A stretch of 63,599 bases of DNA, the filler included, from Octopus bimaculoides (taxonomy: Eukaryota), in NCBI RefSeq assembly GCF_001194135.2. It is 4 parts of 4 records of this genome, joined end to end, with 100 filler letters (N's around TTAATTAATTAA, not from the genome) between each part and the next. Parts side by side here need not be neighbours in the genome. Positions count along the whole stretch, not along the records: positions 1 to 23,859 come from NC_069004.1; 3 more parts are not named here. One strand, 5' to 3'. A model generated the notes under the pieces. That model had not been told where the DNA came from. It made no database searches and worked only from the letters and a program-made list of their open reading frames with translations. Positions 6,758 to 13,580 of the stretch are shown here, piece after piece. A program made the translations under genes and the position numbers. Position 1 is the first letter of the stretch, and the number at the start of each line of letters is the position of its first letter.

Positions 6758-6907
6758 ATGCATTTACCTGCATGGTATCAGATGAGCGTTATGATGCTGA
6801 CACTTCTCGCTTGTCTTCAAATCACTGTAACCCGAAAACAAAACCGGTGTATGAGACATTATTTTGTTGAGGTCGTCCGGCACCCCTACAAAGACTGTGA
6901 ATACAAG
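6758..6907 (+). CDS. NDP: Norrin-like cystine-knot growth factor, first coding exon (signal peptide + N-terminal mature domain)
   Basis: A pyrimidine tract and AG acceptor (6746-6747) precede an ATG at 6758. Translation: MHLPAWYQMSVMMLTLLACLQITVTRKQNRCMRHYFVEVVRHPYKDCEYK (50 aa). It has a hydrophobic signal-like N-terminus, and RCMRHYFVEVVRHPYKDC matches human Norrin RCMRHHYVDSISHPLYKC. It ends at a phase-0 donor AAG|GTTAGT (6908). Not in the ORF track (<60 aa). Confidence 0.93.
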
Positions 6908-7004
6908 GTTAGTAATCTTAATTATTTGGTGAATTGACAAAATTACTCAAATGGTAAATTAAAAAATGATAGATTTAGTTAAAACCTAATTGATCGATGT
7001 ATCG

Positions 7005-7513
7005 ACGGAATTTTGGTTTAAGTACCCCATATAACCCCTCAGATTTGCTTTTGAATTTTCAGAAAATTTTTGCGAACATGGGAATTCATACGATTATGAC
7101 AAATTAAAATTTTTTTTTAATTACCTTCCATCACAAATCCTAAAATCCCTCTCTTTTTCAAATTTTTTTCAAATCAGAGTTTAAAATACAAGACAGTCCG
7201 AATTTTTTGCTTAAATGCCAGCAATGGACCACTCTTAGGTACATCATCATTCCATTAGATATGTTTATGAGAAGAAATATATGGAAAAACATCAATACAT
7301 GTCAGAGTGACAAAGAAACAAGGACGGAATCAGGTGGTCATGAGATGAGTTAAAAACAAGAGCCAAATCGCCCTTAAATCACACACACAAAAAAATATTT
7401 CCATAATCGTATGAATTCCCGTGAGTAGAACAAATTCGCAAACATATTCTGAAAATTCCAGAAATTAAAATAATTATGAGGAGTTGTATGGGATGCTTAA
7501 AACAGAATTCCGT
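7005..7513. mobile_element. MITE-like element with long imperfect inverted arms in the Norrin intron
   Basis: ACGGAATTTTGGTTTAAG...GAATTTTCAGAAAATTTTTGCGAA...GGGAATTCATACGATTATG (7005-~7100) is mirrored by ~7400-7513. Confidence 0.7.
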
Positions 7514-8058
7514 TCAAATATCTACAAGAAATTTTAATGAAAACTTGTATAGCATAAAGTATAATAGTTTTTTTTTTGCCATCTCCAGACTCTTAAAAAT
7601 CCAGCTGTTGAACGAACGAAACGCTCGTAAAATTTATACCTTACTCTTCTTCCTCCTCTGCTACAAATTGATATTCTGAATGTTCGGAGGCAGTTATGTG
7701 TCCTAAGCACGGACACATCACATCACATCACAGAAGACGGGATAGGATAGACCAGCGCTTTAACCCAATCAATGGTCCATACTGTCCACCATTTCCGTCT
7801 GCTGAAGCACTTTGGAAAAATATTATAACATGGGGTATAAACTGATTCTGAATGACGCCCGTCGTATACATACATACATACATACATACATACGCACACA
7901 CATATATACATACATACATACATACATACATACACACACACACAGAGTTTTGGATGTGAATAAATCCCCACTCTTCTCTTCATTATCAATTATATACATG
8001 TATATGCATACACATGTATGTATGTATGTATGTATGTGTGCGCATGCGCGTGAGTGAA

Positions 8059-8134
8059 GGCGTGTGGCTTAGTGGTTAGAGAATTCGGCTCACGATCGTA
8101 ATATCGTGAGTTCGATTCCCGACAGTGCGTTGTG
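8059..8134 (+). mobile_element. Truncated tRNA-derived SINE head
   Basis: A-box TGGCTTAGTGG and B-box GAGTTCGATTCCC. No complete cloverleaf or acceptor stem. Confidence 0.65.
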
Positions 8135-10042: not shown

Positions 10043-10456
10043 GTTTCTTTCTATATGACGTATTTCTCTACGGACAGAAAAAAGTGAATGACCTGACCTG
10101 AGTTTCCATTCTATATTTGAAACTTTCTTCAGAGACCCATGTACACCAGACACGTATCCACATGTGCCAGTGTATTTAGTTACACATTTGCGCAGCTTCT
10201 GTTCAATCTTGTTTCAATGCAGATACCTGTGTGTGTGTGTGTGTGTGTGTGTGTGTGTGTGTGTGTGTGTGTTTCTTTCTATATGACGTATTTCTCTACG
10301 GACAGAAAAAAGTGAATGACCTGACCTGAGTTTCCATTCTATATTTGAAACTTTCTTCAGAGACCCATGTACACCAGACACGTATCCACATGTGCCAGTG
10401 TATTTAGTTACACATTTGCGCAGCTTCTGTTCAATCTTGTTTCAATGCAGATACCT
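10043..10456 (+). repeat. Exact 186-bp direct duplication separated by (GT)n
   Basis: 10043-10228 equals 10271-10456 (period 228); may be an assembly artefact. Confidence 0.9.
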
Positions 10457-11059
10457 GTGTGTGTGTGTGTGTGTGTGTGTGTGCGTGTGTGTGTGTGCGT
10501 GCGTGCGTGCGTGCGTGTGTGTGTGTGTGCGTGCGTGTGTGTGTGTGTGTGTGTATGTGTGTGTGTGAGTGTGTGTGTACGTGTATTTTTGAAAGCAAAC
10601 TAGAGACGTAAAATCTGGGTATTTTGTAAGAAGGCAATAAAAGCCAAGCATCTCTCTTTAACTTTGAGTTCTTGTGGATAACTACGATCACCTTTTCGTC
10701 ACTCATACATCACTCATACATACATATGTACATACCTATATACAATAATTTCTAGACTTGATATTACTTTCAGTTTTAGTACAGGAAACGGCAAGTTACT
10801 GCTGGCTTATAAACACCGGACATATCGCACTCACACACAAATCTTTCTATACATCTCTCTATATCAATATATCTCTCTATCTATATCTCTGTCTATATCT
10901 CTCAATCCATCTCTCTATATCTATCTCTATCTCTCTATCTCTATCTCTCTATCTGTATCTGTCTATATCTTATTTATCTATATCTATCTATACCCTGTCG
11001 TATTTGTCTGTCTAACTAGCTAGCTCTCTCTTTCTCTATCTCTCTCTCTCTCTCTATCT

Positions 11060-12819
11060 CACTCACTCTCTATGGTTTTCGCTTTTATTTTTCAGACGTT
11101 ATTGTTTTCACTTTAAATTTTCAGATGCTATTGTTTCACTTTAAGTTCAATCATTATTGTTTTCACTGCAAGTTTTCAATCGTTATTTACAAATAACGAC
11201 AAATTACTGACAGAAAGAAGTTCACAACTACTGATGAAAGTAATTTCATAATTTACTGACAGAAGTAACTTCATAAATTTCACTTCAATCTGTACACTTT
11301 GTTAAATTTGCCTAGAAATTTCTTATTTACTTTTGCAACGTTTTTGAGGGATCTTTTTTTCTTTTTTTTTACGGTATTACTGATGGTTCATAATTTACTG
11401 ACAGAAGTAACTTCAAAATCTTCACTTAAATCCGTGCACTTAGTTAATTTCCCTGAAAATTTCTTATTTACTTTTGCTGCGGTTTTATTTTTCTGTTGTT
11501 GACGGTTTTTTTCTGGTTCCTTTGATACTGGGCCTTTAGTTCACCGAGTGACAAATCTCGCTTCAACCCGTATAATTCTTTATTTTCCGTAAAAAAATTC
11601 TTATTTACTTTTTGCCCGTTGTATTAAGAAACATAATTTCCGTTACCCAGTTATTTTCATTGTTTACTATTTTCTTCACCCATGTATTTCTGTATATGTA
11701 TATAACCATGCCTAAAAGGAAAGTATCAAATTTGTATACAATGTCAAGGTCAGCCAAAAGAATGTCTCTGTCCAGGGAAAGAGAGACAGATGCAGAAAGG
11801 GAAGCATACCAAGGAATGAACAGACTGTGCACTACAAAAGCCAGAGCATTTCAAAATGATGAACAGAGGCATGTACAGCTAACAAGGAATAGGATCTCCA
11901 CTGCAGAACAAAGAGCAGTTGCAACAGCTCAAGGAAGCAACTTCTATGAAGCAGCTTTCAATTATGATCCAACAGTTCATTATGCAGATGACACTAGAGT
12001 TTCCATTGGTAAGATGACAACTGAGTGCATACATTGTAAAGCAAGGAAGTGGCCTGGAAAGACACCTGCACTGTGCTGCAGTGGTGAAATGGTTAAACTC
12101 CCTGCAATCCCCCAACATCCAGAGCCATTGATGAAACTGTTGTCATCAACTGACCAAGATTCCAAGCACTTCCAAAACAAAATTAGACAATACAATGCTG
12201 CACTACAGATGACGTCATTTGGAGCCACAAGAGATATAACTGAGCCAAGATTCATGCAAACTTTCAAGATCCGAGGTCAGATTTATCTCTACTACTTCTG
12301 TCAAATGAATCACCAAAATTCCTTCAAATATACATTATGGATAATTCTCAACAAGAAGGGCAAGAGAGGTGCAAGAATATTTACGGCATCAGGATGAACA
12401 TTGTAGTATCTCTGCAAAAAATGCTGCATGGCACAACAACCTGATCAGAAGCTTCAAGACAGCGATTGAAATAATTCCACCTGACCCTATGGATTACAAG
12501 GTAGTTATCAGGTCAGACAAGAAACCATCTGGTCAACATGGAGGGAGGTTTAATGCACCAACAGAAAATGAAATAGCTGTGCTTCTGGTTCGGCAAGAAA
12601 CATGACAAGCGTGACATTGTCCTCCATCTCAGAGACAGCACACTGATGAGGAATTCAGAAACACACAGATCTTATGTTCTAAGCTGGCATGGGTTGGACA
12701 GTTATTAATGTAGAAAGTTGGTATCTCAGCTACAGGCAGTTGAGACCTGCGTAATTTAGACGGCATTTTAAAATTTCTTTATTTTCCTTGACCCAGGCAA
12801 TGCCGGGTATTTCTTCTAG
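11060..12819 (+). mobile_element. Internally deleted Helitron in the Norrin intron
   Basis: The 3' end is the hairpin ACCCAGGCAATGCCGGGT (12791-12808) plus CTAG|T (12816-12820). A Rep/Hel N-terminal remnant lies inside. The 5' boundary is approximate. Confidence 0.85.
11708..12680 (+). pseudogene. Helitron Rep/Helicase N-terminal fragment
   Basis: IGKMTTECIHCKARKWPGKTPALCCSGEMVKLP (zinc-finger-like), IRQYNAALQMTSFGA, FKIRGQIY, RFNAPTENEIAV and RDIVLHLRD..SETHRSY. Frameshifted, with a stop, and truncated before the HUH and helicase domains. Confidence 0.88.
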
Positions 12820-13355
12820 TATATATATATATATATATATATATATATACAGGTTAATTCAACTCTGTATTACTTAAAGTCTCGTAGGAGCAGAACGCAT
12901 TCACTTTCTCAGATATATGAAGTTGAAATTGTGGGAATTTAAAAGGATTTTTTAAATGGACTTTCATTCTTCGGTTTAGTACAGATAGGTACTTTGGCTA
13001 AGCATTTCAGGTAATTGTTGTATATAGCATTTGACAGTGCAGCGACGAGAGTTACCATATTATGATTGTGCAGGTAATTGAATGAACTGCTGTCCCTTTT
13101 TAGCCGAAGTATGCGTGTAGCCTAAACTGATCAATGGATGCCTAAATATCTTCACCAAGAAACCATGGTTTAATTTTCTTTTAATTTTCTTTAGTCCAAC
13201 CCCGTACTTCTGAGGATGTGGGCGCGTTCTGCACCAATGAAACGTTAAATAATGTGGGGTCGAATCAAATTGTTATTAAATACTTGCAACTCCAACTCTA
13301 TTAAACATTCTTGTCTGATAATTTTCGTTTTTTTTGTTTGTTTGTTTTCTTGCAG

Positions 13356-13580
13356 AAGATGTTGTTGACTCGCTGCAAAGGCCACTGTACGAAATCAAGA
13401 ACGCAACCGCTGATAACTTTCTCACCAATATTATTAGAACCTTTTCATTACATATGTTCTTGTTGTCGCGATAAACTTTCCATCATGAAAGCTGTCCGTC
13501 TTCAGTGCCAGGACGGTGAGGTGGTATACGCCACATACAGATATATAATGCGTTGTGGATGTGAACACTGTCGGCGATAG
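13356..13580 (+). CDS. NDP: Norrin-like cystine-knot growth factor, last coding exon
   Basis: A T-rich tract and TTGCAG| acceptor (AG 13354-13355) precede KMLLTRCKGHCTKSRTQPLITFSPILLEPFHYICSCCRDKLSIMKAVRLQCQDGEVVYATYRYIMRCGCEHCRR*. It has the CxGxC, CxCC and CxCxxC motifs and ATYRYI, identical to human Norrin 118-123. It joins exon 6758-6907 in frame to give 124 aa. Confidence 0.95.
   Translation, partial: KMLLTRCKGHCTKSRTQPLITFSPILLEPFHYICSCCRDKLSIMKAVRLQCQDGEVVYATYRYIMRCGCEHCRR

Follow-up and report, generated by a model that had tools for sequence, protein, structure and literature searches.

A very probable orthologue of Norrin (NDP), and candidate Frizzled-4 ligand, in Octopus bimaculoides

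Introduction

Norrin (NDP) is a non-Wnt ligand of Frizzled-4 (Fz4) that is usually described from vertebrate work alone, and the human gene has a three-exon structure. The roles of individual residues given here follow Chang et al. 2015. The disulfides comprise the cystine knot (C39-C96, C65-C126 and C69-C128), a further bond (C55-C110) and intermolecular links through C93, C95 and C131. The contact set for the cysteine-rich domain of Fz4 is S34, R38, R41, H43, V45, D46, L61, A63, K102 and K104, and mutating R41, V45 or L61 abolishes Fz4 binding. On the receptor side, Chang et al. named N55, K109, N152 and E160 as determinants in the Fz4 domain. The GAG site consists of K58, R107, R109 and R115, and a putative LRP5/6 patch of K54, R90, R97, G112 and R121.

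Invertebrate Norrins have been in print since Roch & Sherwood 2014 aligned the NDP of oyster, limpet, urchin, acorn worm and amphioxus with a probable coral NDP. Public annotation lists norrin-like models for many molluscs, Priapulus, echinoderms, Saccoglossus and amphioxus, and Bastin et al. 2015 report Fz4 orthologues from molluscs other than octopus. Within the literature that we could search, no paper addressed the function of an invertebrate Norrin. Here we describe an octopus locus and compare it with these systems. Positions count along the window, the whole 63,599-nucleotide stretch of DNA that was analysed. Overall, we consider it likely (roughly 80%) that the locus is an NDP orthologue with two coding exons, whose mature product of ~100 aa would be a secreted cystine-knot protein.

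Results

The original prediction described two exons with canonical splice sites and a secreted product of 124 aa, and this structure can be read directly from the DNA:

6728..6757, + strand: short leader; TGA in frame at 6728-6730, then a pyrimidine tract plus AG (6746-6747)
6758..6907, + strand: coding exon 1, 50 codons (sequence and translation), with the start codon, signal peptide and first beta-hairpin up to K50
6908..13355, + strand: phase-0 GT-AG intron, 6,448 nt
13356..13580, + strand: coding exon 2, 74 codons plus TAG, with the remaining cystine-knot domain, the C-x-C-C motif, the YRYI strand and the C-terminal Cys

Translation starts at the ATG at 6758, and exon 1 runs to the donor site (TACAAG followed by gttagt), its last base being 6907. 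The acceptor (ttcttgcag followed by AAGATG) places the start of exon 2 at 13356, and the TAG stop finishes at 13580. Together the exons make up 375 nt, in frame, and K50 at the end of exon 1 aligns with human K58. The in-frame TGA at 6728 precedes the ATG by ten codons, and the AG of the leader (6746-6747) is 11 nt before it. This pyrimidine tract and AG may be the acceptor of an upstream non-coding exon, like that of human NDP.

The intron contains no assembly gap and is AT-rich (36% GC), with many microsatellites and repeat fragments; the window is likewise microsatellite-rich, at 33% GC. No other gene is recognizable in the window, and Pfam scans of nine other ORFs gave nothing significant. 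ARAGORN and Rfam scans returned no matches, leaving the cephalopod-type SINEs that had been described in the intron with no family match. Repeat analysis shows only a dispersed element of ~98 nt.

The predicted peptide is 100% identical to XP_014786296.1, named 'norrin-like [Octopus bimaculoides]' in RefSeq, and a RefSeq protein of O. vulgaris is 99% identical to it. These matches bear out both the octopus source of the gene and the caution, voiced in the original prediction, that a norrin-like model might already be annotated. The description of the gene as hidden or new does not hold, as octopus Norrin is already known by name in RefSeq and invertebrate NDP was reported by Roch & Sherwood 2014.

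The protein has 12 cysteines: the 11 known from Norrin plus one that lies within the signal peptide. A hydrophobic core at residues 9-19 (hydropathy) fits a signal peptide of about residues 1-24, and the AlphaFold2 model has a confident N-terminal helix. The mature chain of ~100 aa is single-domain with a short N-terminus; Cys_knot is the sole Pfam domain that passes, and there is no match to the DAN domain. The HMMER alignment of human Norrin R38-C131 to the octopus protein gives 47/94 identities with a single 1-aa gap, the count that the original prediction had reached by hand. All 11 Norrin cysteine columns, including the C95 equivalent, are Cys in octopus, again as predicted. A phmmer search of the PDB recovered Norrin chains at E=1e-28 (103 bits, octopus residues 28-123), followed by bursicon at E=0.26 (14.9 bits) and the vWF CK domain at 0.3. 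Judged on sequence, the similarity to Norrin is far above chance.

Two AlphaFold2 runs, with alignments of 12 and 64 sequences, gave low-confidence models (pLDDT 56 and 63). The top 10 Foldseek matches of these low-pLDDT models are all Norrin, but with TM 0.25-0.3 and an rmsd of 16 A; they are sequence-driven, and we therefore set them aside as structural evidence. The ~50% identity to solved structures suggests instead that the octopus protein would adopt the three-hairpin fold and head-to-tail dimer of Norrin.

A profile search covering 1.84 billion representatives returned 69 matches. Full-length members of the Norrin family scored at least 103 bits. Below them, at no more than 45 bits, the next full-length matches are NBL1/DAN-like proteins (~36-40 bits against the Norrin profile) and an octocoral protein of ambiguous affinity. 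The latter carries the annotation 'norrin' and is no nearer to Norrin than to bursicon, so that Norrin may or may not be pre-bilaterian in origin.

A phase-0 GT-AG intron at the boundary between human K58 and M59 occurs in octopus, oyster, priapulid, brittle star, amphioxus and gar (six species, five phyla). The human exon-3 ORF fragment begins at M59, and oyster RNA contigs are spliced exactly at the homologous K/X boundary. The neighbours of the Norrin genes of oyster (JAB/MPN, TAF9-like, TSP1), amphioxus (TNF) and brittle star (EF-hand) have nothing in common, and synteny therefore carries no information here. In a neighbour-joining (NJ) tree with outgroups other than bursicon, the 17 Norrins form a single group that no outgroup enters, at a bootstrap of 48% that is low because the protein is short. 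The octopus protein falls in a mollusc clade (63.5%), and the Norrin clade mirrors the species tree. Octopus is 52-62% identical to other molluscs versus about 45-50% to vertebrates.

Orthology of the locus to NDP is thus well supported by the 47/94 identity, the 11 cysteines, the contrast between E-values of 1e-28 for Norrin and 0.26 for bursicon, and the common intron boundary, and we regard it as almost certain on these comparisons. The homology search and the phylogeny, checks of the kind suggested in the original prediction, place octopus among the Norrins, and Norrin is clearly older than vertebrates, with orthologues in molluscs, a priapulid, echinoderms, acorn worm and amphioxus.

The receptor sites are conserved only in part. 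Half of the Fz4-contact residues (5/10) are identical between octopus and human (R38, R41, V45, L61 and K104), with D46E in addition; the other changes are S34R, H43Y, A63T and K102I. The GAG site keeps 2/4 residues (K58 and R107), with R109Q and R115V. The putative LRP5/6 patch keeps 2/5, with a charge reversal at K54D together with R90H and G112D. In molluscs, conservation of both the GAG site and the LRP patch is poor, and Y120, R121 and Y122 are invariant in the alignment. Across 12 invertebrate Norrins we found no excess conservation of the Fz4 site (identity 0.48 vs 0.41 at other non-Cys sites; permutation p=0.32).

Discussion

By homology, octopus Norrin would be a secreted, disulfide-linked head-to-tail homodimer acting as an extracellular ligand. 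Its beta1-beta2 and beta5-beta6 hairpins would most likely bind the cysteine-rich domain of a Frizzled-4 orthologue, and this binding would lead to beta-catenin signalling. We put an Fz4-ligand mechanism in octopus at about even odds. We are less sure still that LRP5/6 serves as co-receptor or that heparan sulfate is used.

The alternative that survives best accepts the orthology and proposes that the role of Norrin, in octopus and ancestrally, was not Fz4/LRP5-6 activation. On this account the protein would be a BMP/TGF-beta antagonist or a ligand of type-B LGRs, with Fz4 coupling a later, perhaps vertebrate, refinement. NBL1/DAN-like proteins came out of the profile search as the closest outgroups, Roch & Sherwood grouped NDP with BMP antagonists, and a 2:2 LGR4-Norrin complex is in the PDB (9khh). 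The poor conservation of the GAG site and LRP patch in molluscs and the lack of excess conservation at the Fz4 interface lean the same way. Nevertheless, half of the Fz4-contact residues are retained, including R41, V45 and L61, whose mutation abolishes binding; the Y120-R121-Y122 strand is invariant; and molluscs retain an Fz4 orthologue. An Fz4 role and a BMP or LGR role can also coexist. We consider a non-Fz4 role possible, if somewhat unlikely.

The original prediction also linked the gene to the closed circulation and camera eyes of cephalopods. Bivalves, limpets, a priapulid, echinoderms and an acorn worm have the same gene, similarly conserved. Because animals without either capillaries or camera eyes retain Norrin, this link is not supported, and the presence of the gene in octopus is uninformative about vessels or eyes. 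We regard it as improbable that octopus Norrin is an Fz4/LRP5-6 agonist deployed in cephalopod endothelium, retina or blood-brain barrier. If it were, cephalopods and vertebrates would each, in parallel, have recruited a Wnt-independent beta-catenin ligand for closed vasculature.

It is still less probable that the octopus model is a relic lacking function or expression, either a pseudogene or a gene-prediction artefact. Exact-protein look-ups with the octopus proteins matched no contigs, and hence gave neither an octopus transcript nor further flanking sequence; the O. vulgaris model is truncated (93 aa, beginning at M32); and the intron is large and repeat-filled. Against these points stand the intact ORF, canonical splice sites, signal peptide and complete set of 11 cysteines. 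Moreover, the two Octopus species differ by 1 substitution in 93 aa, and transcripts of the oyster orthologue show splicing at this very position.

An identity as bursicon, GPA2/GPB5 or a mucin/vWF-type cystine-knot domain is highly improbable. The Pfam Cys_knot domain is common to these proteins, the 11-Cys pattern is the same as that of bursicon, and de Lau 2014 credits Deng et al. 2013 with proposing that Norrin is the bursicon orthologue. However, the PDB E-values and, in the profile search, a drop of over 55 bits effectively refute such an identity. We also rejected DAN/NBL1, as the protein has no Pfam DAN domain, carries the C95 equivalent, and belongs to a family against which NBL1-like proteins score only ~36-40 bits. 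Vertebrate contamination of the scaffold, which the similarity to vertebrate Norrin itself could suggest and nothing further does, is refuted by the mollusc-clade placement, the same protein in O. vulgaris, the higher identity to molluscs than to vertebrates and the composition of the window, and its likelihood is negligible.

Bursicon is reported to be conserved in molluscs and echinoderms (de Lau 2014), where Norrin also occurs, and the two are therefore coexisting paralogues. Their presence in the same animals argues against Norrin as the vertebrate orthologue of bursicon. The orthologues in molluscs, priapulid, echinoderms, hemichordate and amphioxus make Norrin far older than retinal or brain vasculature. 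Both points, the age of the ligand and its coexistence with bursicon, already follow from public annotation and Roch & Sherwood 2014. The locus contributes one more mollusc Norrin, and a handy cephalopod entry to the role and receptor of invertebrate Norrin.

Comparison with known systems

Like octopus Norrin, bursicon alpha/beta (PDB 8ENB) is a secreted single-domain cystine-knot protein with the 11-Cys pattern, but the similarity is marginal (E=0.26) and bursicon is a heterodimeric LGR2 hormone. The NBL1/DAN BMP antagonists, the closest outgroup by profile search, have related cystine-knot and CxCC motifs. Unlike octopus Norrin, NBL1 lacks the 7th conserved Cys (Roch & Sherwood 2014), and it reaches only ~36-40 bits against the Norrin profile.

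Human and vertebrate Norrin (NDP; PDB 5BPU, 5CL1, 4MY2, 9KHH) is ~50% identical to the octopus protein over the whole mature domain. Octopus has all 11 cysteines, including the dimer cysteines C93, C95 and C131, as well as the SHP motif, the KAxRL motif, the YRYI strand, the signal peptide, the short N-terminus and the phase-0 intron between K58 and M59. It differs from vertebrate Norrin at the Fz4 site (H43Y, K102I, A63T and S34R), in a GAG site that retains just K58 and R107, and in the putative LRP5/6 patch (K54D, R90H and G112D).

The mollusc NDPs (oyster and limpet, and the RefSeq norrin-like proteins of Crassostrea, Saccostrea and Gigantopelta) are in the same clade as octopus, at 52-62% identity. 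They have in common with it the Cys pattern including C-x-C-C, the two coding exons and the intron position. The intron is 6.4 kb in octopus versus 1.6 kb in oyster, and the C-terminal ...RW tail of bivalves is absent from octopus.

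Gene structure and product

The two-exon spliced gene of the original prediction is borne out by direct reading of the frame, splice sites and stop. Thus, the octopus gene is real and correctly delineated:

6758 (+), start codon ATG (direct sequence reading)
to 6907 (+), coding exon 1, 50 codons, ending ...TAC AAG/gttagt
between 6907 and 13356 (+), intron of 6,448 nt, GT-AG, phase 0, free of assembly gaps
from 13356 (+), coding exon 2, acceptor ttcttgcag/, stop codon TAG at 13578-13580

An in-frame TGA at 6728 lies ten codons 5' of the ATG (sequence reading). The spliced protein has 124 aa and 12 cysteines, one of them in the signal peptide; residues 9-19 make up a hydrophobic core near the N-terminus (hydropathy). 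A pyrimidine tract and an AG 11 nt 5' of the start codon (window 6728-6757) could be the acceptor for an upstream non-coding exon. Human NDP has such an exon; in oyster, the transcripts are uninterrupted by introns over the 1.1 kb before the ATG.

Identity and orthology

A Pfam scan detected nothing beyond the general Cys_knot domain (E=4e-6). When all PDB chains are searched, Norrin entries take the first six places (E=1e-28 to 2e-27, spanning residues 28-123), ahead of bursicon (0.26) and the CK domains of von Willebrand factor (0.3-0.45). Aligned by HMMER from R38 to C131, the octopus protein and human Norrin share 47 identities in 94 positions with one single-residue gap, exactly the count first made by hand. 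Among 5.8 billion proteins, the search found an exact full-length match, XP_014786296.1 "PREDICTED: norrin-like [Octopus bimaculoides]", together with a UniRef entry for O. bimaculoides, an O. vulgaris "norrin-like" fragment (99% identical) and a Mytilus protein (56% identical). The exact match identifies the window, described before as probably octopus, as Octopus bimaculoides DNA and shows that the gene model already bears this name.

In a profile search, counting norrin, norrin-like or NDP annotations, the family includes the molluscs Saccostrea, Crassostrea and Gigantopelta, with unnamed models in Mytilus, Solemya, Tegillarca, Nucella and Lottia, as well as Priapulus caudatus, the brittle star Amphiura, Branchiostoma and vertebrates throughout. 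Only 69 matches came from an exhaustive HMMER scan across 1.84 billion cluster representatives; new among them were the sea urchin Diadema, lamprey and a fused Saccoglossus model with Norrin at its C-terminus. Full-length members of the family reach 103 bits or more. The next full-length matches, an octocoral "norrin" protein and NBL1/DAN-like proteins from Hydra and Aplysia, reach at most 45 bits. In PDB searches the octocoral protein (P0141, Paramuricea clavata, annotated 'norrin') matches Norrin (8e-9) and bursicon (2e-8) equally well, and the Aplysia control ranks NBL1 first. Based on the score gap and these results, the bilaterian Norrin family is sharply bounded and the octopus protein sits well inside it. 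The octocoral protein, with 11 cysteines and SHP and CxCC motifs, bears on a pre-bilaterian origin; Norrin may have arisen as early as cnidarians. No arthropod, nematode, annelid or flatworm Norrin was seen in these searches, whose 50%-identity clusters and unnamed metagenomic entries mean that absence is not proven.

Two of the retrieved models look like gene-model fusions. In the Priapulus RefSeq 'norrin-like' model (locus L005, 10300-10494 and 18367-20092) an upstream exon encodes a 7tm_3-like membrane segment and only the last two exons are Norrin; in Saccoglossus the Norrin domain forms the C-terminal end of an EGF/lectin-like model of 847 aa.

All 11 Norrin cysteines align in octopus and the other molluscs, including C93, C95 and C131, which join the two subunits of the human dimer by disulfides (Chang et al. 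2015). C95 is Ser in the priapulid and ambulacrarians. The amphioxus and lamprey models (P0085, P0132), which may be imperfect, lack both C93 and C95. An extra amphioxus intron falls exactly at the C93/C95 motif (locus L004, Branchiostoma lanceolatum, about 16041), which leaves loss of the dimer bridges or mis-splicing of the models as the two explanations.

A phase-0 GT-AG intron splits the coding sequence between exactly equivalent codons in the genes of octopus, oyster, amphioxus, Priapulus, Amphiura and gar, and a human ORF fragment (P0091) starting at M59 is consistent with it. Two RNA-derived oyster contigs are spliced precisely at this site, indicating that the mollusc gene is transcribed. 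In a neighbour-joining tree, 17 Norrins form one clade with no outgroup within (bootstrap 48%), octopus is placed among the molluscs (mollusc bootstrap 63.5%), and the order mirrors the species tree (protostomes, ambulacrarians, amphioxus, vertebrates); the modest bootstraps reflect an alignment of about 100 columns. The PDB search, bounded family, cysteines, shared intron position and tree agree with the call of a Norrin orthologue, for which the sequence evidence is solid.

Repeats and other window features

Assembly gaps (N runs at 1619-1677, 4164-4173, 4963-5358 and 21752-22099), typical of a draft scaffold, lie outside the Norrin gene. The following features were also found:

2077-2370 (+) and 2510-2752 (-), ORF fragments with motif HHPPYSPDLVPTDYHF, weak DDE_3 match only (E=0.24)
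11612-12397 (+), longest window ORF (261 aa), in the Norrin intron, Cys-rich stretch CIHCKARKWPGKTPALCCSGEMVKLP
9782-9879 and 13682-13779, dispersed element of ~98 nt, opposite orientations, 82% complementary
10000-10455, exact tandem duplication in the Norrin intron, two 228-bp copies, 100% identical, (TG)n at the head
17220-17327 and 20300-20407, 108-nt inverted repeats (88%), about 3 kb between
18538-19188, 19550-19810 and 19867-20226 (-), AT-rich ORFs between these repeats
14864-15019, hairpin, 72-nt arms, 96% complementarity, 12-nt loop
159-416, hairpin, 92-nt arms, 89%, 74-nt loop

The ORF fragments may be C-terminal pieces of mariner/Tc1-type transposases. Neither the 261-aa ORF, whose Cys-rich stretch looks similar to the N-terminal part of Helitron-type proteins, nor the ORFs between the inverted repeats have Pfam matches; the 17220-20407 region may be a DNA transposon. 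The hairpins are MITE-like palindromes. One ~98-nt copy lies in the Norrin intron beside TG-rich repeats, and the other just 3' of the stop codon beside (ACAT)n. This element is probably what had been reported as intron SINEs; ARAGORN and Rfam gave no tRNA or Rfam match.

Receptor sites

Judged by homology, octopus Norrin is probably secreted as a disulfide-linked homodimer that serves as a ligand. The Norrin-Fz4CRD structure (Chang et al. 2015) assigns residue roles that map onto it as follows:

Fz4 contacts (10): 5 identical (R38, R41, V45, L61, K104), D46E conservative; changed S34R, H43Y, A63T, K102I
GAG site (4): 2 identical (K58, R107); changed R109Q, R115V
Putative LRP5/6 patch (5): 2 identical (R97, R121); changed K54D, R90H, G112D

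The Y120-R121-Y122-I123 strand is invariant across the species compared, lamprey excepted. Across 12 invertebrate Norrins, Fz4-contact residues are 0.48 identical versus 0.41 at other non-cysteine positions (permutation p=0.32); with no significant extra conservation at these sites, the sequence is compatible both with Fz4 binding and with its absence. Lottia, Crassostrea and Aplysia have Fz4 orthologues (Bastin et al. 2015), and thus a partner plausibly exists. Two AlphaFold2 models were poor (pLDDT 56 and 63); with these low-pLDDT models Foldseek ranked Norrin chains first, at TM of only about 0.25-0.3, a sequence-driven match and not structural evidence. Alternatively or in addition, octopus Norrin might antagonise BMP/TGF-beta, like the neighbouring DAN family, or bind a type-B LGR, as in the LGR4-Norrin complex (PDB 9khh); such a role is a live rival to Fz4 signalling.

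The suggested link to camera eyes and a closed capillary system may exist, but nothing in these results supports it. Among the animals that keep the gene are bivalves, limpets, snails, a priapulid, echinoderms and an acorn worm, with similarity to vertebrate Norrin at least as high as in octopus, so its presence in octopus is uninformative on vessels or eyes.

Relation to known families

The gene is annotated and the family published, and both are already known: RefSeq lists as norrin-like the protein that had been called hidden. A Norrin in the bilaterian ancestor fits the span of the family, but is not new, as Roch & Sherwood (Genome Biol Evol 2014, PMC4079206) treated NDP as a bilaterian family and reported a probable coral orthologue, with NDP_Amphioxus, NDP_AcornWorm, NDP_Urchin, NDP_Oyster, NDP_Limpet and NDP_Coral beside NDP_Human in their supplementary alignments. 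Norrin is unmentioned in the lophotrochozoan Wnt-pathway component surveys checked, and we found no functional studies of invertebrate Norrin in the open-access literature. According to de Lau et al. 2014, Norrin was put forward by Deng et al. 2013 as orthologous to Drosophila bursicon. Molluscs and echinoderms have conserved bursicon (de Lau et al. 2014) and also carry Norrin, and the two are therefore coexisting paralogues rather than orthologues.
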